Shown here piece by piece: positions 13,973 through 64,000 of a stretch of DNA of 64,000 nucleotides (position 1 is its first letter; the number at the start of each line of letters is the position of its first letter). Below the pieces are notes generated by a model. It was given only the letters and a program-made list of their open reading frames with translations. It was not told where the DNA came from and made no database searches. Source of the DNA: Rhodosorus marinus CCMP1338 (taxonomy: Eukaryota; Plantae; Rhodophyta); assembly GCA_029953675.1 (NCBI GenBank), contig JAMWBK010000010.1, positions 1,612,001 to 1,676,000 on the forward strand. The letters are read 5' to 3'. The translations under genes and the position numbers were made by a program.

Positions 13973-16563
13973 TCGTCTGGTAAGAACTCAGGATCACGCC
14001 TACCCGCATCATAGCGCAGTTTTTGCACCTTTCTAGCATAAAGCATATTATTCCTGGCTACCATGTATTGATCTTGCTGTTGTCGTAGCAAGGCTTCCGC
14101 TGCATCAGGTAAAGGCGTAGGGGTAGCCTCTTCGGCGCGTGGTACGAATAATGTCTCTAGTAGGTTAGGGTTTCGCCCATATAAGAGCTCAAACGGTGAG
14201 TACTTACTGGCTTCAGAAATTTGTGTGTTATATACCAGGTCCGCCATGGGAAGATCAGAGGCCCATGTCGCTTGCTGCTCTTACATCGCAGATAGGTCTC
14301 CAAAGTCTGGTTAACTCGTTCTGCCGTCCATCCGTCTGGGGATGGTATGACGTACTTAAGTGAGTTTTTACCTTGAGCATCCTCATTAGTTGCTGCCAAA
14401 AGAGCCCGGTAAACTTGGAATCTCGATCGGAGACTATCGTCTGCGGTAAGCCTGCAAAACGCACCCAGTGTTCGAAAAACAGTTCTGCCGTCATACTGGC
14501 GTCTGCATCCGTCCTAGTCGCGACAAACTTCGCGTACTTCGAGAATCGGTCGATGATTACCAAGATTGCGTCATGTCCGGATTCCGTCATCGGGAGACTG
14601 ACAATAAAGTCCATCGAGATATCCTGTAACTTTGATTCTGGTACTGGCAGAGGTTGTAAAAACCCCTGAGCCGCCCTTAATGGTTTCTGACGCTGACATG
14701 TCTCACACTTCTGTATCAGGGACTGGACGTCGTCTCTTAAGGTCCGCCAATAATAACGCCGCTTCAACAGGTTGACCGTTTTATGAAGGCCAAAATGACC
14801 TCCGGTTGGTTCATCATCGTGTTTCCGCAGAAGTCCGAATTTTCGAAGCAGTCTACCCCGAAGCAGTAAAGTACGAGGAGTAGGGATTTCGTAGGAAGCA
14901 AGACATTTTATACAAACATCATCGCGTTTGTGTGCCGTGAAAATTCGTACCGGACTTACTGCGGAAACTCCATGATGAACCAACCGGAGGTCATTTTGGC
15001 CTTCATAAAACGGTCAACCTGTTGAAGCGGCGTTATTATTGGCGGACCTTAAGAGACGACGTCCAGTCCCTGATACAGAAGTGTGACAGCGTCAGAAACC
15101 ATTAAGGGCGGCTCAGGGGTTTTTACAACCTCTGCCAGTACCAGAATCAAAGTTACAGGATATCTCGATGGACTTTATTGTCAGTCTCCCGATGACGGAA
15201 TCCGGACATGACGCAATCTTGGTAATCGTCGACCGATTCTCGAAGTACGCGAAGTTTGTCGCGACTAGGACGGATGCAGACGCCAGTATGACGGCAGAAC
15301 TGTTTTTCGAACACTGGGTGCGTTTTGCAGGCTTACCGCAGACGATAGTCTCCGATCGAGATTCCAAGTTTACCGGGCTCTTTTGGCAGCAACTAATGAG
15401 GATGCTCAAGGTAAAAACTCACTTAAGTACGTCATACCATCCCCAGACGGATGGACAGACAGAACGAGTTAACCAGACTTTGGAGACCTATCTGCGATGT
15501 AAGAGTAGCAAGCGACATGGGCCTCTGATCTTCCCATGGCGGACCTGGTATATAATACACAAATTTCTGAAGCCAGTAAGTACTCACCGTTTGAGCTCTT
15601 CTATGGGCGAAACCCTAACCTACCAGAGACATTATTCGTACCACGCGCCGAAGAGGCTACCCCTTCGCCTTTACCTGATGCAGCCTAAGCCTTGCTACGA
15701 CAACAGCAAGATCAATACACGGTAGCCAGGAATAATATACTTTATGCTAAAAAGGTGCAAAAACTGCGCTATGATGCGGGTAGGCGTGATCCTGAGTTCT
15801 TACCAGACGAGTTGGTGTTATTGGCAACAACAAACCTGCCGCTGCGGGACCCGAAACCTTTCAGACCGCGCTACATCGGACCCTTCAGAATCACGCGAAA
15901 GGTGAATGACGTAGCCTATACCTTGCAGTTACCAGCCGAGATGAACATACATCCCACGTTCCATGTCTCCCTGCTGAAGAAATTTCGGGGAACCCCCGAC
16001 AACGTTCAACTCAAAATACCCGATTGTGCAGCTGAAGTAACAGGAGGCGAAATCAAATCCGTGCTTGGTCATCGGATGAAACCAGAGGGAACCAGCGAAT
16101 ATATGGTTTACTTCGAGGGTGAAACTGTAGCTTATGCTCGATGGATTGCAGCTCATCAGTTGCCACAAACCACTGCTACAAAAAAGCAAATTCGCTACTA
16201 CATGAACTTTCATCGTGCTGCTGAATCTGCCCGACACCGCGCTTCTTCGGTGGGAGGGATGTGACGTCTCCACCTTCCAGCAATGTCCGGCTATGCAAAA
16301 TTATGCTCGGGCTGTGCCAAAATCTCTGGAGGTGCAACACCCTTTTGATTTTAATAGTTATTGCACATCCCGATGGAGCAAGAGTATAAGTGCGATGGGC
16401 AAACTCGATATTTCCCAGGTTAGCTGGAGAGAGAAAAAAGGATATAGGAGGAAAAAGGATAGAATTGGAATATATTACCTAATTAGGGAGTAATTAGGGG
16501 GGAATAAACCCGGAAATCTGGAGTAATTGAGTGAATATCCAGCTGGCAGTTTGAGACGTAAAA
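13973..16563 (+). mobile_element. Truncated Ty3/Gypsy chromovirus (family A relative): integrase + chromodomain + PPT + 3' LTR, with a fold-back inverted duplication
   Basis: + strand HHCC/DDE integrase (GHFG...CETC, MDFIVSLP, SDRDSKF), GPF motif, chromodomain, PPT GGGAGGGA, LTR 16260-16563; frameshifts and stops. 13973-14844 is the reverse complement of 14939-15810. Confidence 0.9.
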
Positions 16564-17131
16564 GAGCCGGCAAAAACCACATTTGTGGTTGCCACCGAAC
16601 GGGTAAATGATAACCTCTCGTATAGATTCAAGCCAAACCTTGGTCGAGTTTCGAGTTGCAAACGACCATATCAGAAAAAGAAGAAAAAAGCGTGAAAAAT
16701 ACGGACGCAATCGGTTGTCGGACCATTTATCGTACGAAGCTTTTTTTCTTTTTCATTCAGGTCCGATAAACTTATATCGGACGGAAGCGACAGTCTTCAT
16801 ACTATATTATATTAGTGTTGTCATATCTCCCCCTCCGAAAAGGTTATGAAGCGTCCGATATAAGTTTGTCGGACCTGAATTGCCTAATAATTAATCCATA
16901 TGGTTTTGGACTCGTGTCCAGTACAAATTTATCTGACCAAAAATAAAAATAAGATAAAGAGGTTCGTCCGATAACGGTCCGATAATGACCAATTGACGTC
17001 CAATCTGTGGGGCATCGTGTTCGTAATACATAGTGCGCTCCATAATGTTGCTGCGTTTCAACTTTCTGAATTGGTTGCATTCTGAAAAAACCCCAGATTG
17101 TATGACAGCCTGTCGACCTCAGAGGAGCCTA

Positions 17132-20100
17132 TGTCACTTCCTTAAGAGACGGGTTCATTAGCACGACCTTGCACTGGAGCCCGGAGGGCTAAACATAGCA
17201 TGCCGGAGGGCTAAAGTGGAGAATCGTGGCAAGATTTGGCACTCTAAACCTAGCCTATATGTACCATAACTATGGCATCTCTCTAAGGGTTAGTGCTAGG
17301 AGAAAACGAGTTAGGAAGAGTTAGGAAAAAGAAGTTAAATCTGAGACAAAAATAGTAAAATTTACCAAGAAATTGAAATCAAGTCATCTGAGGACGTTTC
17401 AGATGGTCTCACGTCTGGAAGATACAGGTTCAGTAAAACGGCCGGAGGGCTAAAGTGGAGAATCGCGACAAGATTTGTTACGCTAACCTTAGCATATATA
17501 TACCGTAACTATGACATCTCTCTCAGGGTTAGCGTCGAATTCGTCCGAGGATGGTAGCTGCTGGTAAATCGCTGGGCAGTAGGCAACAGTCGCAGGTACT
17601 CCTCCACCAGTTTTGACCGGAAATTAGCGCCTCGGTCGGTTAATATCTGTACTGGCCACACGATCTCTTCGTAGATGAACTTGGCGACATTTGCCTGCGT
17701 CGCTTCCGGCATCGCTCGTACTAACGACCAACGTGTCAGGGACTCTACTGCTGCAAGAATCCACTGATTTCCAGTCAGGGACTCTACTGCTGCAAGAATC
17801 CACTGATTTCGTTGGTCGGTAGTACGAGCGATGCCGGAAGCGACGCAGGCAAATGTCGCCAAGTTCATCTACGAAGAGATCGTGTGTCCATATGGAGCTC
17901 CAGTACAGATATTAACCGACCGAGGCGCTAATTTCCGGTCAAAACTGGTGGAGGAGTACCTGCGACTGTTGCCTACTGCCCAGCGATTTACCAGCAGTTA
18001 CCATCCTCGGACGAATTCGACGGAAGAAGGGGGGAAGAAGGGAGTTAGGAACAGTTGGGAAAAAGAACTTAAGTCTAAGACAAAGGAAAAGCCGATTTAC
18101 GAAGAATTCGAAACCAGAACAAACATCATCTGAGGACGTTTCAGTTGGTCTCATCGCGTGATTGCGATTGAGGAACCGACCGGAGGCAGAGAACCTGATG
18201 GACAAAGTAAATGAGCCCAGAACCAGAACCAGAATGTCGTCATTCATAAAGATCCAGGCCCAGCACCCGAAGGCTTACGACGGTCGGAGGGATGCATTGC
18301 TGATTATCAAGTTCCTAAACAGCCTACGAACATATTTTAAATTAGCGCAGCTACCCGAAGACGACGATGAATATAAGATACCCTGGCCGAGGCTTATCTC
18401 ACCGGAGACGCATCATATTGGTGGTCGCTGATACACGAAAATCGAAAAACAGACCACTACGACGGATTTGAAGACAACCTTGAAGGCTGAATTTTACCCG
18501 GCCGACGCGAAAAAATCTGAGCTAAGCAACAGTTCGCGAGACCGGTCCAACGGACGTCGGTCGCGGCGTAATCGGCTTATTTCAACAAGTGCCTCATCCA
18601 AGTCGGAACGATCTCCGATTCTGAGAACTTTGACCGTTTTGTCCACGGATTGAAGACTGACATCAACGGTATATTTATATACACGATGTCCAAACATTTG
18701 AGGAGGCACAAGCGCTGCCGCTGAAAATGGAGCTGAGATGGCCAGCCAAAATTCTAGAAGGGAGGGAAAACTTTCACCAAACACGGCAACGTCCCAAACC
18801 ACCTTCGTACGGCTGTTGAACACCATATTTTTTAACCGGTTGGGAAAGTGTCCATATCGGTGGATTTCATTGTCAACTTACCATTGACGTCGGAAGGCTA
18901 TGACTCCATCCTCGTTCCCGTCGACAGGTTTACGAAATATGTGCGGTTCGTTTCGACGACCACTTCCGCCACTGTTTCCGAAGTTGCAGAGTTGTGTTCA
19001 CACCATTGGCTGCGCATTGCGGGTGTTCCCGCGGATACCCTCTCCGATCGCGATCCCCGATTCACGTGTGTTTTCTGGGGACACTGATGAAACTACTGAG
19101 GGTGAAACAGAACCTCAGTACGGCGTATCACCCACAGACAGATGAACCGACCGAACGGACAAACCAAAAGTTGGAAACCTACTTATGATGCACTGCCCGG
19201 CGCAGAATTGGGAGGCAGACCTTTCAACTGCCGAGCTGTGGTACAAGAGTCAGGTCTGAGACCCATTTTCCCCTTTGGAAGTGCTGTACGGACGCAACCC
19301 GACGTTAGCGTACGACCTCATCTTGCCGGACTACCACAGTGTGCAACTCCCTTACCCGAAACTGCAACGGTGCTCCTACGACGCCAACAAGATCAACAAT
19401 CTTTATACCGAGTCAACGTTAGGTTCTGCCCAGGACGGCAGCGGTTTTACTCCGATCGTGGGAAAAAAGACGTGCAGTTTAAAACCGGCGATTCCGTCGT
19501 GCTATCTACGCGAAATCTCCACCCGCCGGGTAGTAAGGTTTTTCGACCTCGCCATATGGGGGGGGAAAAGGCGACGCGCCAAGACATGAGGCCATCATGT
19601 CACGAAAATCGCGGACAGGAATGCGGGCCTTTCAAAGTTCTACAAAACATCGGCGAAGTTGCGTACCACTTAAGCTCACGGAGGATTTTCAAATTCATGA
19701 TGTTTTTCTGCGACGAGTCGAGTAATACCTGCGTTCCTGTGGCTCACGCAACCCTGCGAGGTTAAGTCGGTATTCGGGCATCGGCTGAGCGCTGAGGATT
19801 TGAACGAATATTTGCTCTATATGGATTGGGGAGACAACGGATGATCTACGATGGTTATCACATCATCTGCCGCAGAATGGGAATACCAAGAAGCAGATCC
19901 AGTATTACACAAACCTTCATAAGGCTGCTTCATCTTCAGCCAGAAGTCTTTTCCTGCGGAGGGAGGAGATGTCACGTCCTGAAGAGACAGGTTCAGTGGC
20001 ACGGCCGGAGGGCTAAAGTGGAGAGTCGTGACAAGATTTGGCACGCTACCCTTATAGCCTATAAATACCGTAACTATGACATCTCTCCAGGGTTGGAAAT

Positions 20101-20231
20101 AGGAGAAAGGGGGTAGAAGGGAAGCGAGTTAAATAGGAAGAGTTAGGAAAAAGAAGTTAAATCTGAGACAAAAGTAAAAGCTGATTACGAAGAAACTGAA
20201 ACCAGGGCAAACGTCATCTGAGGACGTTTCA
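17132..20231 (+). mobile_element. Degenerate, internally deleted Ty3/Gypsy element (family B) with three LTR copies and TSD GCCTA
   Basis: LTRs TGTCAC...GGACGTTTCA at 17132-17401, about 17408-18143 (interrupted) and 19970-20231. GCCTA at 17127-17131 and 20232-20236; PBS 18146; gag remnant (PKAYDGRRDALL) about 18235-18820; integrase remnant 18850-19760; PPT GGAGGGAGGAGA. No PR/RT/RNase H seen. Confidence 0.88.
17533..18022. repeat. Inverted repeat of a foreign Gypsy-type integrase fragment inserted inside an LTR
   Basis: Arms 17533-17733 and 17810-18022 are reverse complements (12-bp deletion in the left arm); the loop holds two 37-bp direct copies. Encodes NQWILAAVESLTRW...YGAPVQILTDRGANF...SSYHPRTN. 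Confidence 0.9.
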
Positions 20232-21705
20232 GCCTAAAGCATACTGCGGAGCCTAAGGATGGGATGATTGATATTAGACATTCGATGTTTTTATCGGACA
20301 CAAAATAAGACATGTATTTTAGAAGTATTTCAAGCGGGCTTCGCCTAATTGTCTTCATTGATTCGAACACAAATTGTCAACGAAAAAGCTTATCGGAGGG
20401 TTTATGACAGGGTTTTGAATAGAATTTATTTTCTCTACATGACAGACTGTATGCCAGATGTCTTAGACTGAGCGGTGATACCTGATAGTGGATAGAAAAA
20501 GGGAAGAAATTTTTGCAGGTAAACCAAAAATTGAAATTCTTGAGACCCGTAAGTTCTCTATTGCGTAGCTTAGTTTCGCGAAATGCAGATCCGTTCGTGT
20601 CGAACCAACTTACAACTCCGAGGATTTTGGAGAATAAAGGATTCCATTTAACTCTTGGACAATTTCCTCATAACTTAGGTTGGGAATAACGGTCGGATCA
20701 AATCACCGCTTTTCATCATTATTACCGAAGATCCTAATGCATCTGCATCTTCCCCTAGTGGGACTATGGCTACTCTTAGTAGCAGGTGAATAACCTGTGT
20801 GGTGCTTTGTGACTTCTCCGCACTTGCCCAACAGAATTTGGATCTCCATGAGCACAGGCTGCTCCAAATTACGTAATTGAAAATATCGGACGAAGCCATG
20901 GAGAGACGCCTACTTACTATGAAACGCATTTTCGATGAGCATTTATCCGGTCGTCCGCAATTTTGCAATCGGACCTTTTCGGACGTCTTCATATCCGCCC
21001 GCGCAAGAAAACCCCGCTCCGTTTAGTACCAATCGTGTGGGAGCACGCGCCAAGCGTGCTTAACTGATAGAACCAAGTTTGGGGTTTCGTATAAAGTGTG
21101 AGCAAGAAATCAAAATGCTGAGCGCGTGCGGACGATGTTTTTCTAATGGAAACTGGCTTTTCGCGTTCATAGCGCAGAGTGCTTTAGGTTCTGTTCGAGA
21201 ATTCACATAGTCAGACGCCTCCTGCTCGACCACAGACATCAGCGCATCCTTTTGTTTTTTTGCGTGCGTCTGCGGTTGCTGCACTCCACCTGAAAGGGGT
21301 CAAGTCCTAACTTGGTAGAGTTATGATTCCGGCGTTGAGTCCGCGGTGGATGTTAGCGAATGCTGCCAGTCACTAGATGCGCTTGGGAAGAGCAATGAAC
21401 CTTGAACAATGAGCTCTTTAGTCTAGTATCTGCCCCGAGGAAAGGATAATTCCTTGCACTCTGGCTTTCGAGGGGAGTCCGATTTCGAGTGAAGAACAAA
21501 CTCTTCATATTTCTCCGCTGTGGACATTTTTCCATTACATACCTTCGAAACGGCTCGAACGCGCCGAAAAAGCTAGATAGTAAACCATTTGCCAGAATTT
21601 GCCACGTGTGCAACGGAAAACAATCGCATAGTTGCCCTGACGAGAAGGTACCATAATTCGAGCTAAACTCCTACACTAACTAGTACGAGACGTTTTTGTC
21701 AAGTT

Positions 21706-50869: not shown

Positions 50870-51418
50870 CTGGGGTATAGTCTGGGGAATTTGACGTTAG
50901 TCTGGAGTAGTCTGGGTTGACGGTTAAGGGGGCTAACAAGCACAAAGAGAAGGCGAGGTTTTAGTAAGGAAAGCTTCATGATCGAGAAGAAGATGCTGGG
51001 ACCGTACCCAGAACCTCCACGCCACCCGGGCACCAACGGCCCTGGCTCAGGCGAAGAGGGGATGGCGACACCGAATCGGAGTCGGAGGCCAGAACCGTGC
51101 GGCAGGACCACAAGCACCCAGGATTTAGGAGCAGCGAACACCCAGGAGGCTTACAGGATGGAGACTCAAGAGGTAACTGGACCTGCGGCAGCCTTTTTGC
51201 ACCAACTTCGCGCCTTCGACCGGCGCTATCAGGACTTGGGAATTGGTGAAGCAATTACCGCGCAGTTCTACCAGGCTGTATTCAAACTCTACTCACGGAT
51301 TAACAGCACCACTGAACTCGAAGGAATTACCGGACGGGTCTGCGAGCTTTCAGCAAAACCTTATATGTGGCACGGTGGAGCCGCAGCACTGAACCCCTCC
51401 CAACTCCTGCAAGATCAC

Positions 51419-52216
51419 GAGGCGTCACACTCGCCTCAAGTACATCCTCAGCGAATTTTTGACTCGGATAAGGCATACGGTTGAGGTTGAGTCGGAACTG
51501 CCCAGATCAATCTCGGACTCTGCACCGCCCCGTTGTATAGCCGATCTCCTCGTCTCCGACGCTGCTGCCAGACGCTAAACATATGTGGACCTTGCGATTA
51601 CCTTCCCCGTGGCCAGCGCCCACCTCACCGCAGCCGCCCGCCGCCGGGGGGCCGTGGCTTCAGCCCTTCGAAGAGTTAAGGAACGACGGTATGCTGAGAG
51701 CATGGCCAGTCTGCCTTGCGCTGAGGGTCGCTCTCACCGGTTCCAGCCATTCATTGTGGAAAGCTTTGGTCACGTCGATAAGTCGGGTTTAGAGTGGTTG
51801 CGGAAATGTTTTGCTGAGCATCCTACTGAATATTTGGCGCTCTTGAGGCGTTTAAGTGTCTCCCTTTGGCGATATTCCAGCGACATGCTTTCCGAGGCGC
51901 GCCATCGGCGCCTGGGGTTGCATGCTTCCCTCCCTAGTTATTAGTTCATCTTCACGCCTTGCGTAGCGCTTCAGGCTATGCTAGTAAAGTCCTAGTAAAG
52001 TCCAGTAAAGTCCTACTGAATATTTGGCGCTCTTGAGGCGTTTAAGTGTTTCCCTTTGGCGATAATCCAGCGATATGCATTCCGAGGCGCGCCATCGGCG
52101 CCTGGGGTTGCATGCTTCCCTCCCTAGTTATTAGGTCATCTTCACGCCTTGCGTAGCGCTTCAGGTTATGCTAGTAAAGTCAGCAAAGTCCAGTCCAGTA
52201 AAGTCCAGTAAAGTCC
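51419..52216 (+). mobile_element. 5'-truncated family 1 insertion made of two tandem 3' ends, TSD AGATCAC
   Basis: 51419-52010 is about 99% identical to 62989-63578; 52011-52216 is a second, more diverged last about 205 nt. AGATCAC at 51412-51418 and 52217-52223. Confidence 0.9.
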
Positions 52217-52612
52217 AGATCACCCGCCGGTGGCGGCCATCAATCAACATGCAGCCGGAACGCGTCTCAATCAACTTCCGCTCAGGACAGGTGTCACGGT
52301 TCCAGTGGACTATTTCACGTCTCCAACAGCCAGCTGGGTATTACTCAAATTATTCCATATTTCGAGTTTTATTCCCCCCTAATTACTCCCAAATTAGGTA
52401 ATATATCCCAATTCTATCTTGTTCTTCTCTATCTTCTTCCTCTTCTCTCCAGCTAACCTGGGAAATATCGAGTTTTGCCCATCGTACTTATACTCTTGCT
52501 CCATCGGGATGTGCAATAACTATTAAGCTCAAAAGGGTGTTGCACCTCCAGAGATTTTGGCACAGCCCGAGCATAATTTTGCATAGCCGGACATTGCTGG
52601 AAGGTGGAGACG

Positions 52613-55600
52613 TCACATCCCTCCCACCGAAGAAGAAGCGCGGGGTCGGGCAGATTCAGCAGCACGATGAAAGTTCATGTAGTAGCGAATTTGCCTTTTT
52701 GTAGCAGAGGTTTGTGGCAACCACTGGTGAGCTGCAATCCATCGAGCATCAGCTACTGTTTCCCCCTCGAAGTATACCATATATTCGCTGGTTCCCTCTG
52801 GTTTCATCCGATGACCAAGTACGGATGCGATTTCGCCTCCAGTCGCTGCTTCAGCTACCAACTCGGGTATGTCGGGTTGTACGTTGTCGGGAGAACCGAC
52901 AAATTTCCTCAGCAGGGAAACGTGGAACGTTGGATGTACCTTCATTTCGGTTGGTAACTGCAGGGTATAAGCGACATTGTTCACCTTACGCTGGATTCTG
53001 AAGGGTCCGATGTATCGAGGTCTGAACGGTTTGGGATCTCGTAGCGGCAAGTTCGTGGTTGATAAGAGCACCATTTCGTCAGGGAAAAACTCAGGGTCAC
53101 GCCTTCCCGCGTCGTAGCGGTTTTTCTGTACTTGCTTTGCGTACAACATGTTGTTCCTTGCTGCAATGTATTGGTCCTGCTGATGTCGTAAAAGAACTTC
53201 GGCTGCCTCAGGTAAGGGAGAAACGATAGCCTCCTCTGCACGTGGTACTATTAATGTTCCCGGTAGCTCAGGGTTTCGTCCGTACAGAAGTTCGAAGGGC
53301 GAATACTTAGTAGATTCCGAGATTTGCGTGTTGTAGACCAACTCCGCCATGGAAAGATCTGCGGCCCATGTAGTTCGGGTACTGTTGCATCGGAGGTATG
53401 TCTCCAACGTCTGATTGACTCGCTCCGTTTGTCCGTCCGTTTGCGGGTGATAGGCTGTACTCAAATTCGTTCTGACCTTAAGTATACCCATCAGTCGTTG
53501 CCAGAATAGGCTGGTGAACTTAGAATCCCGGTCTGAAATTATGGTTCGGGGTAATCCCGCGAACCGCACCCAGTGTTCGAAGAATAATTCTGCCGTTTTC
53601 GCCGCATCTGCGTCCGTCCGGGTTGGTATAAATTTCGAATATTTTGTGAAGCGATCGACAATTACTAGGATTGCATCAGCTCCCGATGTAGTCATGGGAA
53701 GACTAACGATGAAATCCATGGTGATGTCCTGCAACTTTGTTTCTGGTACAGGTAGCGGCTGTAGAAATCCTTGTGATGCCCGGAGTGGTTTCTGCTTTTG
53801 GCAGATTTCGCACTTTCCAACCATTGATTGAACGTCATCCCTCATTGTGCGCCAATAATAACGTCTCTTCAAAAGGTTGACTGTTTTATGGAGACCGAAA
53901 TGTCCTCCCGTGGGTTCCTCATGATATCGCCGTAGTAAGTCCGGTACGAATTTCTGGGGCACACAAACGCGATGATGTTTGTACAAGATGTCCCGCTTTC
54001 TACGAAATCCCTGCTCCTCGTACTTCACTGCTTCTGGGTAGACTGCTGCGAAATCAGGATCTTGTAGATATGCTCCGGTCCAATCTTCTTGGGATAGTAT
54101 ACCGGAAACCGCCATCTGGTTGATCGCTCCCCGGCTGAGTGGGTCCGCAATATTTTCCGCCCCTTTCTTGTATTCGATATTGAAGGAAAACGGCATTAAG
54201 CGATTCACATATCTCGCTTGTCTCTTGGTAAGCTCCTTTTGCGAGTGTAGAAAACGCAAAGGGTTATGGTCGGTGCGAAGCCCAAATCGTTGGCCCTCGA
54301 CGTACGTCCGCCAATGTAATACCGCTAGGGTCAACGCGTAGAGTTCCCGTTCATAAGTGGAATACTTCTCCTCCGTAGTGGTGAACCGCTGTGAGAAGTA
54401 CGCAATTGGATGTTCTCCATCTTCAAAGGTTTGCAATAACACAGCCCCTACTCCCTTGTTACTGGCATCAGTACAAATTGTGAAGGTTTTTGTAAAATCC
54501 GGATTTCGTAGTACTGGCTGCTGCATCAATTTCTCCCGCAGGGTGTCAAATGCTTTCTGTTGCTCCGGTCCCCACAGAAATTCTACATTCTTCCTCGTGA
54601 GGTTGGTCAGGGGTGCTGCTACCGGGCTGAATCGTGGCACATAGTTACGGAGATAGCCCGTAAAACCCAAGAAGGACCTGACATCGTGCACATTTTCTGG
54701 GACTTGCCAATTTTTAAGGGCGGCTACCTTGCTAGGATCCGGCCGTCGTCTCCCACTCCCAACCAGATGACCCAAATATTTCGTTTCTGGTACACCGAAG
54801 ACGCACTTTGACCGCTTTGTATAGAGTCGGTGGTTTCTCAGCTTCGAGAAGACGATGTCTAGATGTCTTTTGTGGTCTTCCTTATTCGCCGAGTAGATAA
54901 TAATGTCGTCAAAGAAGATCATGACGAAAACGTTTAACTCGATGAAGAAAATACTGTTCAATAGTCGAGTAAACACAGCAGGAGCATTTGTCAGTCCAAA
55001 CGGCATCACTAACCACTCGTAAAGACCAAATGGCGTCGTGAACGCTGTTTTTGGAATGTCCTTCTTCTCCACGCGTAGTTGCCAGTAACCACTCCTCAAA
55101 TCGATCACACTGAGATATGTGGCTTTGCCGAGAGCATCTAGACAATCGTCTATTCTTGGCGGGCTGGTCTTGTTGAGGATGGTTGCCTGGTTCAGTTTGC
55201 GGTAATCGATGCACAATCGCCGCCCACCATCTTTTTTGTCCACAAAAAGACAGGGTGAAGCAAAAGGCGGTGAGCTAGGTCGAACGAGGTTTTTGCTCAG
55301 CAAATCTTGTAGTTGAGTTTTCAGATCCTTCTGATCTGCAAGACTCATTCGGTATGGTCTTTGGGATGTTGGTTCAGTTCCCGGTTTCAGATCAATTGTA
55401 AAGTTGACGTTTCGCCAAGGGGCCAGGTTCTTAATGTCTTCCACAAAAACGTCAGCGTATTTATCCGTAATAAATTCCTCCAGATCTTTCGCCTCTTCCA
55501 GTCGTTTTTGTGTAAATTTCGTCATATTTTTGATTTCGGGTTCCTCCGTATAATTTTCAGGTTCTGGGTGGTCAGGTTGTTCAGGTTCTACTTCAGGGTT

Positions 55601-56229
55601 TTGTTCAGGTTCTTCTTCACTGTAATTCTCCCGGTTTTCAGGTTTCTGTTCAGGCTGAGTGACAAGTTCTTCAGCTTCTTCTGGTTGATTGCTCAGCTTG
55701 GCTTCTGGTTTAATGGCTGGATCTGTTTCAGTTTCTTCGGGGTATTCAGGTTCTTCTGGGTATTCGGGTTCTTTTTCTGGTTTTCCTTCTGGTTTGATAA
55801 GTTTATCTTCTGGGTATTCGGGTTCTTCTGGGTATGCAGGTTCTTTTTCTGGGTTTAACATCAGCAGCTGGTTTGGTAGGTCGAGTCTCGCTTGATAGTA
55901 GCTGAGGAAATCTCTTCCCAAATATCCAGGGCTCGTAGCGTCTTCAACTACATAGGGCTGCCAATCGAAGTGATGACCACCTAGTTGTAGGGTCACGTTG
56001 GCTTCGCCCAAGATTTTTATGGATGTGCCCGGCGAGGCCGTGTCCAATTTCCGTGTTGAGTCGGAATTATTGTGGTGGCGTCCGGTCTTCCCCTCAAGAC
56101 AGAGTGGCTGCTGCCTGTATCGACGAGCAGGGGGGTTACCTTGCCGTTGACCAACCCTTTGACTGTCATGTCCCCGTGGAGAGGGATAGGGACGCCTTGT
56201 TCAGCAACAGTAACGGCGTCCCCTACTGC
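52613..56229 (-). CDS. pol: Gypsy Pol: protease - Glu/Pro spacer - RT - RNase H - integrase - chromodomain (frame break inside protease)
   Basis: LLVDTGSS (separate frame), RLCIDYRKLN, FFDD, TDASNKGVGAVL, GHFG..C..C, DRDSKF, GPF, chromodomain EYMVYFEG. Confidence 0.93.
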
Positions 56230-56999
56230 TGCTCCTCTTTTAACTGCTGGGTTAAAGGCGGTGCCGACTTCGAGACAGTCAGATCCCGATCAGGGTTGTT
56301 CCAGCAGATCCTTTGTGTATGCCCCTTCTTCCCGCAGTAGTTGCAAACAATGCTGGTGTAGTTACGCTTCTGCAGCGCTTGCGTTCCGGGTTGGTAAATG
56401 CGTCCAGACCTGGTTCCCCTGCTTACAGTGGTCTGGGGCGTTGCCATTTTTTGGGGAAATTTCTCTTCCCGTCTGGAAGGTTGGCTGGCTGCCTCAGCTC
56501 CCTCAATTTTTAGGGCAAGTGCCTGTGCCGCCTCAAAATCCTGCACGTCCTGTATGTAGATGTATTTCTTGACCTCGGGTTTAAGGCCTTCGACGAAGCG
56601 GTCGAATTTCTCTGAATCAGAAATTTCTCCAACCTGGATCAGACATTTGTTGAAATATGCGGAATATGCTGCTACACTCGTTTTCTGCTCTGCCCGTGCG
56701 AGTTGCTGTTTCGCGCGGATATTAGCGTCTGCTGGGTAGAATTGCGATTTTAAAGCATCCTCAAATCCGGCGTAGCGCGTGGGTTTTTGCGATTCAGGTA
56801 TCAGGGACCACCAATACGAAGCGTCGCCAGTGAGATAGCCCTCTGCGAGGGTAATCTTGTAGTCGTCGTCGTCGTCAGGCAGACGAGCCAACTTAAAATA
56901 CGTTCTCAAGCTGTTCAGGAACGTAGCAATGAGCAAAGCGTCGCGTCGCCCGTCATAGGCTTTCGGTTGCGGGGCCTGGATCTTGATGAGTGATGCCAT
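56223..56999 (-). CDS. gag: Gypsy Gag with CCHC zinc knuckle
   Basis: PKAYDGRRDA, YLTGDASYWW, FVEGLKPEVK, CNYCGKKGHTQRIC. Confidence 0.9.
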   Translation of the reverse strand: MASLIKIQAPQPKAYDGRRDALLIATFLNSLRTYFKLARLPDDDDDYKITLAEGYLTGDASYWWSLIPESQKPTRYAGFEDALKSQFYPADANIRAKQQLARAEQKTSVAAYSAYFNKCLIQVGEISDSEKFDRFVEGLKPEVKKYIYIQDVQDFEAAQALALKIEGAEAASQPSRREEKFPQKMATPQTTVSRGTRSGRIYQPGTQALQKRNYTSIVCNYCGKKGHTQRICWNNPDRDLTVSKSAPPLTQQLKEEQQ

Positions 57000-58080
57000 C
57001 TGCTGTTTGTCAGGTTTTGGTTCTCAGGTTCACTGGTTCTAGTAGTACTGGGCTCACTTTTCAGGTTCGCATAATGGTTCCTCAATCGCAACTTGCGATG
57101 AGACCAGATTTCACGTCTCCAACAGCCAGCTGGGTATTACTCAAATTATTCCATATTTCGAGTTTTATTCCCCCCTAATTACTCCCAAATTAGGTAATAT
57201 ATCCCAATTCTATCTTGCTCTTCTCTATCTTCTTCCTCTTCTCTCCAGCTAACCTGGGAAATATCGAGTTTTGCCCATCGTACTTATACTCTTGCTCCAT
57301 CGGAATGTGCAATAACTATTAAGCTCAAAGGGGTGTTGCACCTCCAGAGATTTTGGCACAGCCCGAGCATAATTTTGCATAGCCGGACATTGCTGGAAGG
57401 TGGAGACGTCACAGACTACGTAGCGGCCTTCCCAGTCATCGGGAATGGCAGTACACAACCTACCTACGCTGAGCGCAAGGCTCAGAATGCCTCAGTGCGC
57501 GGAAAGCAGCACAAACCCGCACAGTAGTAACCCCAGGGCCGCAGACCCAGCAAGTTGCCGTGAGACATCAGCACGCTACGGTGGGAGGAGCTATCTGGGG
57601 ACCAGAGACTACACCGGTCCTCGCCACGCTCAGGAATGTACGACCCCCGCGGCAGGATGAAGTGGCCCCATCAGACTTTGCAACGGTTCTTTTGCCAAGC
57701 ATTGGGGATCCCGAGCTCTTATCTCTTATGTGGTGCACGAGGACTTCATTGCTTCCCACGCCAGCCCTATATGCCACCCAGACGCAATCCCGCTTCTCTA
57801 AAGCGCCATTACACGGGGAGTTTTAGGACAGGGATTTTCGGATCCATTTACCCTGCGACACCCCGATCGGGAAGTGACCCTGTCAACTGGCCAGGCGCCC
57901 GAGGCCGATAACCTACTGGGATACAACGAACGCCAACGCATCGCACAGGCGGACATCGCGGCCCAGTCACTGCAGAGGACCATCGAGCAGATTATTCGCG
58001 TCCGTTCGAGGCTTCGCAGGATGCATCTCTCTTTCAATACTCTCGCGGCACTACACGAGTATCTGGACACAGCTAGCGGT

Positions 58081-61000
58081 ACTGGTTTTTTTTTTGTTGG
58101 CTGAGTTGGGCGCGATTGAGTTTGTTCGAGATTTTGGTGTGGGCCGCCATCTTTCTGCGGCTGTTACTCGCCTTTCCCGGCGTCTCCGGGTCGTTCGCGA
58201 AGGGTTTTTTGGGTGGTTTTGGTCTGGGAAGGTGGTTCCGGTAGGGGATTGGTTTATTTTTAGTGTTGGTGTTTTGCGCGGCGATATTTCGGTCATCGGC
58301 AGTGCTTGTGGGGTAGAGCTACTTGATTGGCTACATTCGGTGTGGTAGGTGTAAACCCAGACATATGTGCAGACCGCAGACTATGTTGCAGAGCCATATG
58401 ATGCCTCTTAAGGCTTCACGAAGAGCCAGAAACTCAACCACACGGGTTGAAGTTGCGTTCAGTCTGCTGCATTGCTGGACAGCTTTGGGGGTCGGTCTGT
58501 GGACGTGCTCGGATTCGCATACGCAGATGAGGTACTGTACTTGAAAGCATTAAGGGTTGACTACCAATCAACTAGGCTCCAGTTCGAAATGATGTACTTC
58601 TCTGTCAGGTACCGAGCAGGAGCAAGTCGCACGTGTCTACTGAGGAGTACCTGTGCAGCTTCCGTTGGATTCATCAAAAATAGTAACTTAGTCATTGGCA
58701 GGATGGTAGGTGCTGGAAGGGTTATCTGGGTCACCTAATCAATCTGGGGTTTTGTTTCTTTTTCGGTCGCGAGCGTGTTCGTTTACGGGAAGCACTTCCT
58801 CTGGTACGCCTTCCCCTCGATTTTCCGCGGTGCGTCGTTTGCTTTTGCCACTACTTCTGTCTTCCGGGTGGGTGTGTTGCGGGGCCTTTCCTATTTGGGT
58901 TGGGTTTGGTCGATTATTCTCTCGGTGCGGTTTCATATTGGTGGTGCAACGTTTCTTTTGCGCATTCCCTCAGGATGGTAGGGATATCTCCGCGCTCGAC
59001 GGAGCCTCCTCCCAAGGAGGCACTGCCAGGTGGGGGACTCTGTGTTCGCCTCAGCTGCGGCACGTTTTCTTCCGAGGTTGACTTGGAAGGCGCTTCTGGC
59101 ACCCAGGCGCGTGCACTTATCTCCGCTGTCACCAGCCTGATCACGGCTGCGAGTGATCGTGGAGTGCTCCCTCAGCTCACCCAGAAGCTAGGTGGGCTGG
59201 AATCGGGATTGGTGGCCAGGTCAAATTCAAATTCGGACGAGAATTTGAATTGCCCCAGAGTGGCAGCGTTGGCTGAAGGCAGTCAACATCCGGTCAATCA
59301 ACATGAACCTGTCCCGGGACAGGCGAGGGCTGTTGCTTCTGCGCGGGACAGTACGACGTTGGGGAGCGGCAGGCCGGGCCAAAACGCGCTTCAGCGCTCG
59401 GGGACTCGAGGCAATGGTGGTGGTGACTGTGCGGCAACCGGTGTGGAGGAGACTGCAGCTGTGGACTTCCCTCTCTTGGACCAGCCCTCAGGTGGTCACC
59501 AGCTCCCGGCTAATGCGGGGGCACGTGGTGGCCGCAAGGGGGGCGCTTCGTACGCATCAGTCTTGCGGAAGGGCACCACTGCCACACGTACGGCGGCTAT
59601 GCTCCGTTTCATACCATCTCGCGACCCTCAGGATGGACCTGTGGAGACCACTCTCCAATTTCTGTGGGTGCGAAATGTCCGGCCCCAGACTACACGAGGA
59701 CAGGTTCCGTCTATGCGAGACTTCCGGGACACTTTTGCGGAATCGTTAGGGTGCAGCCGGGGTGATTTCTTCTTCGCAAACTATGAGGGCCGCGACGTGC
59801 TGTTTTTGGTCTCCGCAACCGCCGCCAAGTACCTGGAGGCCTAGCTGGCGAAGCCTACCGAGCAGTGGCCTGAGAGCGCCCGGTGGCCTGAGAGCGCCCG
59901 GTGGCTGCGCTGCAACCCGCAGGTGGTTTTGCACTTGGATTTTGACCGTTTCTCGGGCAATTTCCTGTCTCCGGGAGAAACGGCAGGGCTCTCTGAGCAT
60001 GAGAGCAGCGTGAAGGCGGCAGCGATCCATTGGCTACGGATTCAGCGCCTTGAGAGGATCTTGTTGGAGCGGTTCCGGTCGGGCCCTCGTCACCTGCGCA
60101 TGGCGGTTTCCAGTTTCCTCGATCTGGAGAGGCGACTTGTGCTGACTTCGCGCTACAAGACAGAGCTGCAGCGGGTGGGGATTTTGGAGGGCTCTGCTTC
60201 CAGCACTACTTCCAGCGAGAGTGGTGAGGCAGGGGAGCAGACTGAGGGCATGGCGGTGGTGGACGCCCAGGTTACTTTGCTGAAGCCCGCGGGATCCGTT
60301 CCGCGAGCCTCGCGGAGTGGGCGGCTCACGACCTTGGTGCGGATAGGAGGTAAGAGAGCGAGGACCGACTCCCCCGGGTCTAAGGGGGAGAAGCACGATT
60401 AGCGCTCCAGGCACGGCTGCGAGGTCGCAGCCTATGGATCTACAGTCTTATGTCCTGAAGGAGGGCGGAGACTGGGGCATTTGGCGTACGCGTTTTCGGA
60501 GTTGGCTCCGGCGGTGGATTTCTTTGGAAGGAGGCTCGCTTCCCCTCCGTGGGGGCATTCCCCCAGTCGTCCTTCCTCGTGGAGACCTTCTAGTAGCTGG
60601 AACCATTCTCGATTTCATCTTCACGAGCCTGGCTCGCAACATTCGGGACACAGTCATTTGGGTTTTTCTGGGGGTCATGCCGCGGCTGATTCTGGCCCCC
60701 ATTCACACATCGGAGCGCAGATGGCGAGTACGAGACCGACTGGCCCTGTTCTTGAGGGGAGACTTCGAAGTACTACAGCGCAGCTATTTGGCGTCGTCAG
60801 CACCATCCGTCCGTCGGACTCGGCATGGCACAGTGTCGCCCGTGCCGGCTCGAGTACAGAAATTGGTAGCAGCGGGCGATTTAAGTCGAGCGGCGCGGGT
60901 TTTGGAGGGCCAGGCGCCTGTCCTCCCCTACGATGATAGTCTCGCGCAGACGGTGTCGTCTTTGTTCCCTGAGTCCGACGTGGATTTGTCCCCTGAATTC

Positions 61001-63578
61001 GAGGTATTCTTGGACCGTCCGGAGTTGGCCAGGTTTCGCATCGATCTGACGCTCAGTGAGTCTGACCTGGAGGATTTGCTTCGTACCTCGCGTCGGGGAC
61101 GCTGTCCCGGACCCTCCGGACTAAGAACAGAGCTATTGCAGGCCCTGAGCCAGCCTGGCCAGAGCGCGCTTCTGAGGATCCTTAACAAGTTGTTCCAGGG
61201 CGTATCGGGTGCGTCTGCGCCATGGGAACATCTCCGGCAGGCACAGCTTTGCTTGCTCACGAAACCTGACCACCAGCCGGCCCTGCCCACCCGCGTCTCC
61301 GGCCGATCGGGATGGTGGAGAGCCTACGGAAGTTAGCCGGGAGGTGGCTATGCCAGCGCCTTCGCCAGCGCGTCACAGCTTTTATGGCGCCCTTGCAAGT
61401 AGGGGTGGGATTTTCTGGGGGTTGCGAACTGATCACCCATGGGATCGAGCTAGAACGCGCCAGTAGGCCGGAGTGGGGAGTCTTGGTGGTTGATTTCCGG
61501 AACGCATTCAACAGCGTGTCGCGGACGCATGCGCTAGAGGTGCTCCGACGTGTGTTTCCGGAGGCGTGGCCGTTTCTATTGGGTATTTACGGAGGGGAGA
61601 GCCTCCCCTACTTGACAACGGAGGGCACTGTTTTTCAAGCACATACTGGCGTCCAACAAGGCGAGCCTTGCGGAGCTCTTCTTCATGCCTGTGCCCTACA
61701 GCTCATACTTTTACGTCTTTCGACTGAGGTCTCGGATCTTCGAATCTGCGCGTACCACGATGACGTAACATTGCTGGGCACCCCTGACACCCTGGCTAGG
61801 GGACTGACCGCGATCGAAGCGATTGCACGTCGCGTCGGTTTGACTGTGGAAACAGAAAAATGTCGCTTTCTCCCCGCGAGGGACGTGTCGCTGAACTCTC
61901 TGCCACCCACTCTGCGACTAATCAGCGAACGTGAAGGGTTCGAACACCACGGCGTCGGATTGGGGACTGACAACTTTGTCCAAGCATCCTGCGAGCGAGT
62001 TTTGGCACGGCACAAGCAACTCACCGACGCCATTGAGCACCTACCCGACAGCATGCTGCAATCGGCCTGCTTGCTTTCCCGCTTTTGTGCCGGTCCCAGA
62101 CTCAACTACTGGTTGCGCAGCCTGCCTCCAGCTTGGGGCTCGTGGATCGCGGCTAAAGCCGACGAAATGACCCTGCAACACTGGGGAACGCTCTTGGATG
62201 AGCCCCTCGATCTTGAAGCTGCTCCCGACAGGGACTTAATTCGTGCACAGAGCGCTCTACCGTTGCGATTAGGGGGATTCGGCGTCGCAGACCGTGGGCT
62301 GGTATGCTCGCCAGCGGCGGTTGCCTCCTGGGCTACCGCGCTGCGAACGTTGGTGACCTTCCGGATGCGAAGTGCCTGCCTCTTGGCTCGAGCTTTGACC
62401 AACGAGGATCCAGTGACCCTGCCGCCCCCGCTTTTGACAATTTATGATGGTCTTCAACACGCGTTCAGGAGGTGCAACGCCGTGCCGGACGCAAATCGGT
62501 CCCGCTTTCGTTCCTGGAGGGAGCTGTTATGGGGACGAGCTGGAAGCGATTGAGGATTGTCCCCTCGACCGAGTTCTTGCCGATGACGGAGAGGCTAGCC
62601 CCGGGTCCCCTGTTGCAGACTACCCGGGTTTGAGCCGATTGTGGAGCTCCCGCACTGATGTGATTCAACATAGCCTCACCTGGGGCCAACACAGTGCCGC
62701 TCACACAGTCATGCTCAATTCTCCTCTCACGCCGCCTACCACTGCCGCTCGTCTCCGCGGCATGGGAGGCCACCTCTCGCACTTGTGGTTAACCACTCTA
62801 CCGTCGTCATTGAGTCATCGTCTCGATGCTTTCCAGTTCCGTTCTGCCGCACGCATCTATCTCGGTTTGCCACAGGCTCCGTGGCACTCTAATCGGCCGT
62901 CTTTCTGTCAGGGATGTGAGAGCCGGATTGACGCTTGTGGCTACCACTTCCTGGGTTCCTGCGGACTGTTGCGAGGTCTCCGTACGAGGCGTCACACTCG
63001 CCTCAAGTACATCCTCAGCGAATCTTTGACTCGGATAGGGCATACGGTTGAGGTTGAGTCGGAACTGCCCAGATCCATCTCGGACTCTGCACCGCCCCGT
63101 TGTATAGCCGATCTCCTCGTCTCCGACGCTGCTGCCAGACGCTCAACATATGTGGACCTTGCGATTACCTGCCCCGTGGCCAGCGCCCACCTCACCGCAG
63201 CCGCCCGCCGCCGGGGGGCCGCGGCTTCAGCCCTTCGAAGAGTTAAGGAACGACGGTATGCTGAGAGCATGGCCAGTCTGCCTTGCGCTGAGGGTCGCTC
63301 TCACCGGTTCCAGCCATTCATTGTGGAAAGCTTTGGTCACGTCGATAAGTCGGGTTTAGAGTGGTTGCGGAAATGTTTTGCTGAGCATCCTACTGAATAT
63401 TTGGCGCTCTTGAGGCGTTTAAGTGTCTCCCTTTGGCGATATTCCAGCGACATGCTTTCCGAGGCGCGCCATCGGCGCCTGGGGTTGCATGCTTCCCTCC
63501 CTAGTTATTAGTTCATCTTCACGCCTTGCGTAGCGCTTCAGGCTATGCTAGTAAAGTCCAGTCCAGTAAAGTCCAGTA
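58081..63578 (+). mobile_element. Near full-length two-ORF RLE (CRE-clade-like) non-LTR retrotransposon, family 1; 5' end uncertain (58081-58975)
   Basis: ORF1 58975-60402 (one TAG at 59842). ORF2 60434-63511 (2 frameshifts) has RPIGMVE, QVGVG, DFRNAFNS, GVQQGEP, AYHDD, LPLRLGGFG, CQGC..GYHFLGSC, RH, ADL..YVDLAIT and FIVESFG. Tail (CAGTAAAGTC)-like repeats. Confidence 0.9.
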
Positions 63579-64000
63579 TGAGGGGGGAAAGAACGAAGTC
63601 CCCAACGTAGTCCCTAGCCTCGGTTTTCAACGGCTTTGCTTTAGGTAAATGGATACTGCAGGGGAAAACATTCCATCCGCATTTCATGTCGCTCTCCCCC
63701 CACCCCAGACTGATATTCAATTTTGTCCTGCGAAGCGCCTAACGGCCATGATGCAATGATACTCCCCCCTTATAAACCGTTTGTCTCCAATCGTTGCTTG
63801 CCGGTTTAGGTTTCTAGCTGTAGAGTATGCATTTGGATGCTGGAGGCGGGATCTTCGTTGTGCTTTGCTTAGCCTGCTTTTTCCGCTCACATGTCTTTGT
63901 TTCAGTCCCCGAGGAGACTGAAAATCCATTTCATTTGTTCTTGGAACAAAAAAAAAACGCCGACGACGGCAAAAAGCCGTTGGCGCAAAAAAGCCCGTTG

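Follow-up and report, generated by a model that had tools for sequence, protein, structure and literature searches.

Structure and setting of the element

The window analyzed here is a stretch of 64,000 nucleotides from the red alga Rhodosorus marinus CCMP1338 (assembly GCA_029953675.1, contig JAMWBK010000010.1; the paper for this strain and assembly is PMC10250338). On its minus strand it harbors a Ty3/gypsy LTR retrotransposon of 5,101 bp (52313-57413), referred to as element A in the following. The element is bounded by two LTRs of 305 nt each, which are 99% identical: the 5' LTR at 57109-57413, reading TGTGACG...CGTGAAA in the sense direction, and the 3' LTR at 52313-52617. The 5-bp TSD GACTA is found on either side (52308-52312 on the left, 57414-57418 on the right) and thereby fixes the LTR ends.

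In the sense direction, the 5' LTR is followed by the 2-nt spacer TC (57107-57108), delimited by the sequence and the TSD-set LTR end, and by the core of the primer-binding site (PBS), TGGTCTCATCG (57096-57106). This core opens a predicted stem-loop (57075-57106), which reads TGGTCTCATCGCAAGTTGCGATTGAGGAACCA. The remaining 5' leader (57000-57074), with GAACC and AACCTGA repeats and a conserved TGAGCCC, extends to the ATG of gag. The Gag protein (gene at 56223-56999) is 258 aa long and combines a Ty3 capsid-like domain with a CX2CX4HX4C zinc knuckle; it matches Pfam PF19259 and PF03732, and the knuckle is visible in the translation. Pfam matches and translations delineate pol (52613-56226), which encodes reverse transcriptase, RNase H and an integrase with a Tf2-1-type SH3 domain. 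The polypurine tract GGTGGGAGGGA (52618-52628), located by LTR alignment, adjoins the 3' LTR upstream. All of these features lie on the minus strand. The Ty3-type capsid of Gag, the order PR-RT-RNase H-IN and the LTRs with their TSD place the element among the Ty3/gypsy elements (Metaviridae).

The last 179 aa of pol gave no match to the chromodomain (PF00385; Pfam, E <= 1), which is present in the best pol relatives (39-42% identity). The homolog search with pol found nothing nearer than about 45% identity, and for this reason it contributed no additional leaders. An exact look-up of gag returned no record, and the host assembly appears to be without transposon gene annotation.

Related copies and subfamilies

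A second subfamily, family B, is represented in the window by a degenerate copy on the plus strand. It comprises the 3'-terminal part of a 5' LTR (18046-18144), a PBS (18146-18156) within a stem-loop (18146-18178) that has the loop GUGA and the 3' end ACCG, and a 3' LTR (19970-20232) with the polypurine tract GGAGGGAGGAGA just before it. Its gag region (18233-19800) contains stops as well as an internal deletion that fuses gag to an integrase fragment, and nested inverted duplications occupy the region of its 5' LTR (17533-18022). LTRs A and B share 57% identity over their last 60 nt.

Two further subfamilies come from R. marinus transcripts in an MMETSP transcriptome, both obtained with a gag search. 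Family C is a transcript (L001) that spans U5, PBS, leader and gag, so that these parts are transcribed in R. marinus. Family D is a transcript (L002) with three LTR/PBS junctions (in 1-300 and 985-1051), two of them arranged head to head and the third at the 3' end, a layout that may reflect rearrangement of the locus or a chimeric assembly. The spacing between LTR and PBS is 1-2 nt in families B, C and D, and nucleotide identity in gag among the four subfamilies is only 68-75%.

More distant relatives were reached with a gag profile search, namely in Gracilariopsis chorda and in two ENA contigs. They share the leader block TGGTGGGGATATCC (L011, 1319-1332; L012, 507-520; L013, 1284-1297), which, judging by its letters, looks like a PBS for another tRNA with the acceptor strand GGGGAUA and A73. 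A scan of IMG/VR for further copies of the R. marinus PBS returned a single phage match, attributable to chance.

A primer-binding site with a match to tRNA-Tyr

The core TGGTCTCATCG is identical in all six LTR/leader junctions of the four subfamilies and constitutes the sole invariant block of their alignment. The invariance ends at the position of the acceptor/T-stem boundary or one base past it. In conventional retroelements, 0-5 nt separate the 5' LTR from the PBS, which begins with TGG, is complementary to the 3' acceptor strand and CCA end of a cytoplasmic tRNA and is conserved among copies, with a polypurine tract at the opposite end of the element. Element A shares these traits: its PBS starts with TGG 2 nt after the TSD-fixed LTR end. 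It differs from the convention in three respects, as its primer is apparently tRNA-Tyr instead of iMet, Lys, Pro or Trp, the match to the tRNA is short (11-12 nt), and the PBS is almost fully paired to the adjacent leader in three subfamilies.

We searched JGI metagenome contigs for tRNAs with the acceptor stem CTCATCG/CGATGAG, A73, U8, G10, A14 and a T-loop, and obtained six loci. Three of them (L004, L005 and L008) carry one and the same eukaryote-type tRNA-Tyr(GUA) gene, CTCATCGTAGCTCAGTTGGTAGAGCGGGGGACTGTAA[15-nt intron]ATCCCTAGGTCGATGGTTCGAATCCGTCCGATGAGA; the others are two bacterial-type tRNA-Leu and one tRNA-Arg. The tRNA-Tyr gene scores 59.4 bits against the Rfam tRNA model, its insertion lies at the canonical intron site (after position 37), and without the intron it forms a perfect cloverleaf with the anticodon GUA. 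Once CCA is added, its last 11 nt complement TGGTCTCATCG at 11 of 11 positions, the genes being marine metagenomic ones and not the host's. The resulting 11-bp duplex has a predicted energy of -17.9 kcal/mol.

The three contigs consist almost wholly of eukaryote-type tRNA genes. One of these arrays (L004) holds 28 of them in 4.8 kb, on both strands and with A34 anticodons; neither such arrays nor the tRNA-Tyr gene itself were found in a scan of IMG/VR. Only tRNA-Tyr combines C1, G72 and A73 among the 28 tRNAs of the array, and G72 and A73 are what the PBS implies. A C1-G72 pair together with A73 is the established identity rule of eukaryotic tRNA-Tyr. The 64,000-nt window contains no tRNA gene, and a literature search with the 11-mer and the tRNA sequence returned only unrelated primer sequences.

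From these matches, we infer that tRNA-Tyr is the primer of element A and that the host tRNA-Tyr carries this same acceptor stem, with the 3' end CGAUGAGA. The site would thus apparently be a tRNA-primed PBS of the usual kind whose primer is uncommon. A rare tRNA-Tyr primer had been one of two options in the original prediction, and it is well supported by the exact match to the metagenomic genes, which stem from an organism other than the host. Such priming is uncommon but has a precedent in Achilles, a Ty3/gypsy element of Bactrocera oleae with a tRNA-Tyr PBS (PMC4580426). Unlike element A, Achilles is an insect element with a reported 18-nt match to an insect tRNA-Tyr of another sequence, and no PBS hairpin is described for it.

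A predicted stem-loop around the primer-binding site

Read on the minus strand from 57106 to 57075, the region is TGGT-CTCA-TCGCA-agt-TGCGA-t-TGAG-ga-ACCA, which can form a stem of 13 bp with two bulges. The 5' arm consists of the PBS and the following CA (57094-57106), the loop is AGU (57091-57093), and the 3' arm is UGCGA-U-UGAG-GA-ACCA (57075-57090). These are exactly the letters of the original prediction (57075-57108), although they belong to the minus strand, the plus strand of the window carrying their reverse complement, and 57107-57108 represent the spacer.

The hairpin of element A has an energy of -12.1 to -13.1 kcal/mol. In a 46-nt segment, the minimum free energy is -13.1 kcal/mol (z = -2.3), a value matched by 4 of 200 shuffled sequences; the 40 nt from the start of the PBS yield -12.7 kcal/mol (p = 0.04 against 4000 genomic 40-mers). 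By the comparison with genomic 40-mers, p is 0.04 for family B and 0.02 for family C (-14.8 kcal/mol); the z score of the B fold is -3.05. The three hairpins span -12 to -15 kcal/mol and rank within the best 2-4% of the genomic background. In family D, by contrast, two junctions yield weak hairpins of -7.0 and -7.1 kcal/mol (p = 0.38-0.39), and the outer stem of the A type would be unfavorable or weak there (+2.0 and -5.5 kcal/mol). In the ensemble, 96% of the PBS of element A is paired, always with downstream partners. The 11-nt core on its own is not significantly complementary to the 35 nt downstream (p = 0.06-0.26); the stability of the hairpin requires bases 12-13, which pair within AUCGCR/UGCGAU. 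Rfam gives no family match, whether the window or the leader is searched.

An alternative pairing between U5 and the PBS would join GAGAC, close to the end of the LTR, to the GUCUC of the PBS. It looks conserved by eye, and we rejected it: its p values range from 0.08 to 0.9, and the ensemble favors downstream partners, except in family C.

As to conservation, the 16-nt 3' arm TTGCGATTGAGGAACC is identical in A and B. The loops differ at every position (AAG in A versus GTGA in B), as had been noted for family B together with its different LTR and retained stem. A, B and C all retain the inner stem AUCGCR/UGCGAU, with a wholly changed loop between its halves. Elsewhere the 3' arm drifts: TGAG has become CAAG in family C, and the inner arm is replaced in family D. 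Over the 13-bp structure, 80% of the cells pair, and one-sided changes mostly preserve pairing (U-A to U-G, G-C to G-U). The covariation that the original prediction had proposed to look for is lacking, with changes on both sides in 0 of 13 pairs; this test has low power, since the tRNA fixes the 5' arm and makes compensatory changes impossible.

We consider the stem real and common to three related subfamilies, its excess over chance being modest and its stability moderately unusual by the folding statistics. The claim of a conserved hairpin holds for A, B and C, but D folds weakly, RNAalifold finds no consensus structure among five sequences, and the fold is unexceptional in 121-nt contexts (z = -0.6 and -0.2). 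Moreover, by sequence comparison, the hairpin appears conserved only inside a group with 70-75% nucleotide identity in gag, and A, B and C are related closely enough that the shared arm could be due to inheritance. The PBS-like sites of the distant gag relatives are not hairpinned (-5 to -8 kcal/mol), so the hairpin is not a trait of the whole clade. A hairpin that masks the PBS, as originally proposed, exists in three subfamilies, but its statistics are modest and it shows no covariation.

Leader repeats and a possible role of the stem-loop

In all four subfamilies, the leader is crowded with (A)GAACC(T/A)G(A) motifs (57000-57080 on the minus strand; 18157-18233 on the plus strand; positions 111-266 of the family C transcript; and the family D transcript). 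GAACC occurs 14 times in 463 nt, against 0.52 occurrences expected, a 27-fold enrichment, and AACCTGA occurs three times in the leader of element A. GAACC is the complement of GGUUC in the tRNA T-arm. The GGAACC of the 3' arm is the first of this series, which provides an alternative reason for the conservation of the arm.

Accordingly, the stem-loop might have no function as such, its 3' arm being kept by ancestry or by a role of the (A)GAACC(U/A)G motif in packaging, Gag binding or contacts with the GGUUC of the T-arm, and its pairing with UGGU being fortuitous. We regard this as possible, if clearly not the favored explanation. It would account for the motif enrichment, the zero covariation, the lack of a significant hairpin in family D, the unpaired PBS-like site of the distant red-algal relatives and the non-significance of the core taken alone. 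It accommodates less well that AUCGCR/UGCGAU lies outside the GAACC motif and is still kept in A, B and C despite the change of the loop, that each of these three hairpins ranks so high against the genomic background, and that one-sided changes mostly retain pairing. The stem-loop may gate or time primer annealing, or it may simply be tolerated.

A second conserved block of the leader, (R)TGAGCCC(R), occurs in A, B, C and D1 (57049-57057 on the minus strand, 18211-18219 on the plus strand, L001 and L002), and its distance from the PBS varies. We considered it as an internal iMet site of the copia/Ty5-like kind or as a D-arm contact and rejected both, as the matches extend over only 5-8 nt.

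Modes of priming

Taken together, we find it probable that 57075-57106 comprises the minus-strand PBS of a 5.1-kb Ty3/gypsy element, primed by tRNA-Tyr and enclosed in a stem-loop in A, B and C. When free, the RNA of these subfamilies would fold the PBS and two further bases onto the next ~20 nt, at the predicted -12 to -15 kcal/mol. For priming, the 11 bases TGGTCTCATCG would pair with CGAUGAG-A-CCA, the 3' end of cytoplasmic tRNA-Tyr(GUA), and reverse transcriptase would extend the tRNA into U5 and R in the standard manner. The tRNA duplex would have to displace the stem-loop, whose opening is presumably aided by the zinc-knuckle nucleocapsid part of Gag. A PBS-sequestering stem that is opened by the tRNA and the Gag zinc knuckle seems to us the most economical reading.

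In a more elaborate version, the hairpin and the tRNA acceptor stem would swap partners: while the PBS captures the 3' strand of tRNA-Tyr, the 3' arm, a look-alike of the 3' strand of the tRNA, would take up the freed 5' acceptor/D-arm strand. When nt 1-16 of the tRNA are paired with the 30 nt after the PBS, the duplex reaches -14.8 kcal/mol in A (p = 0.009), -12.4 in B (p = 0.04) and -13.1 in both D1 and D2 (p = 0.02), but only -6.2 in C (p = 0.59). The comparison is confounded in that nt 1-7 of the tRNA have the same letters as the PBS, and the tRNA used is not the host's. We know of no precedent for the capture of a 5' acceptor strand, and this exchange appears unlikely. The same low likelihood applies to a broader scheme in which the leader is a multi-contact platform for tRNA capture that combines the PBS, the swap at the 3' arm and contacts between GAACC and the GGUUC of the T-arm; if it were true, priming would be gated by a switch from hairpin to heteroduplex.

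The original prediction had also raised self-priming by the hairpin, in which a cut behind the downstream ACCA, a mimic of a tRNA end, would leave a 3' end on UGGU from which synthesis proceeds into U5. The geometry of copy A would permit this, since the PBS begins with a U to which the 3' A could pair. The ACCA, however, is present in copy A only; B, C and D2 have ACCG and D1 has ATTG, which would leave a wobble-paired or mismatched primer terminus. Furthermore, the PBS arm is invariant and the putative primer arm varies, the opposite of what co-evolving cis partners would show. A PBS arm that stays frozen while the 3' arm beside it drifts is the pattern produced by an external primer whose sequence the host fixes. 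The invariant 11-mer also stops right at the end of a tRNA acceptor strand and matches real tRNA-Tyr genes, and a cut after ACCA would separate gag-pol from R-U5-PBS. A matching tRNA, found outside the host, and a stem without covariation together point away from self-priming, and we deem this route highly improbable.

Even less credence is due to self-priming of the Tf1 type, which had been cited in the same context and in which the first bases of the transcript fold onto the PBS and are cleaved into a primer. Tf1 of Schizosaccharomyces pombe is said to self-prime with the 5' end of its RNA (in work attributed to Levin 1995 and to Lin and Levin 1997), the first 11 nt of the transcript reportedly pairing with the PBS and being cleaved off as the primer. 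Element A resembles Tf1 as a Ty3/gypsy-type element of ~5 kb, in the Tf-type SH3 domain of its integrase, which speaks for this mode, and in a PBS that lies within an intramolecular duplex, here a predicted one. It differs in that the partner of the PBS lies downstream and that the PBS carries the TGG-plus-discriminator signature of a tRNA-primed site. Upstream, no complement beyond chance is found: across LTR A, LTR B and the transcribed upstream part of C, the best one reaches -9.9 kcal/mol, compared with a mean of -9.7 for random 300-nt sequences and -17.9 for the true 11-bp primer. Both self-priming readings are therefore disfavored, the one by the missing LTR complement, the other by the unconserved ACCA beside a frozen PBS arm.

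Comparison with other leaders and implications

Structured PBS regions are common among retroelements, and leader folds that modulate primer annealing include PAS/anti-PAS in HIV-1, the U5-IR and U5-leader stems of RSV, boxes 0, 1 and 2.1 of Ty1 and the bipartite PBS of Ty3. As in these systems, the leader of element A is predicted to fold around the PBS, and contacts between GAACC and GGUUC would resemble PAS or box 1. The PBS of those elements, however, is mostly accessible, or its flanks pair with each other, whereas that of element A forms the predicted 5' arm itself.

As it stands, the biology is conventional: a red-algal Ty3/gypsy family that had not been studied before, with a PBS of the tRNA-primed kind and modest support for a local stem-loop. 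Rhodosorus and retrotransposons were not mentioned together in any paper found by our full-text literature search, and the present data apparently provide the first view of how reverse transcription of an LTR retrotransposon is primed in a stylonematophycean red alga. They add an apparently clear instance of priming by tRNA-Tyr, which is rarely chosen, and the occurrence of TGGTCTCATCG 1-2 nt after an LTR offers a practical means of recognizing this family when red-algal genomes are annotated. Finally, a PBS-sequestering stem next to a GAACC-rich leader might illustrate how a compact element controls primer annealing.

Further features of the locus

Element A is young, but its protease is split between frames. 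The DTG active site directly follows the gag stop in the -1 frame (within 56017-56226, minus strand), and the long pol ORF, which starts at about 56050 (minus strand), uses a different frame from DTG. In the family C transcript, protease and pol can be read through in a single frame, so the split in copy A reflects either a frameshift or an indel error of the assembly. A stretch with six AACCTGA units within pol of element A (55557-55752, minus strand) corresponds to a PEEQ-type acidic repeat in the interval between protease and reverse transcriptase of the family C transcript. At its other end, the pol ORF crosses the polypurine tract (52613-52628, minus strand) and ends at a stop codon among the opening bases of the 3' LTR. 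The LTR termini (52313, 57413) are TG...AA instead of the usual TG...CA, with an imperfect terminal inverted repeat (TGTGACGTCTCC / GGAGACGTGAAA).

At 13973-16566 lies a partial, rearranged copy of an A-like element. It contains long, near-perfect inverted duplications (13973-14323 with 15460-15810, and 14326-14698 with 15084-15456) and terminates in an LTR of the A type (about 16258-16563, plus strand). Another element with a reverse-transcriptase ORF (61312-62553) is located at 58900-63600. The 3' ~800 bp of this element, including its tandem AAAGTCCAGT units, are repeated at 51417-52200, a segment that looks like a 5'-truncated second copy and not like an LTR, as it overlaps an ORF. Element A is located between this repeat and the reverse-transcriptase element.
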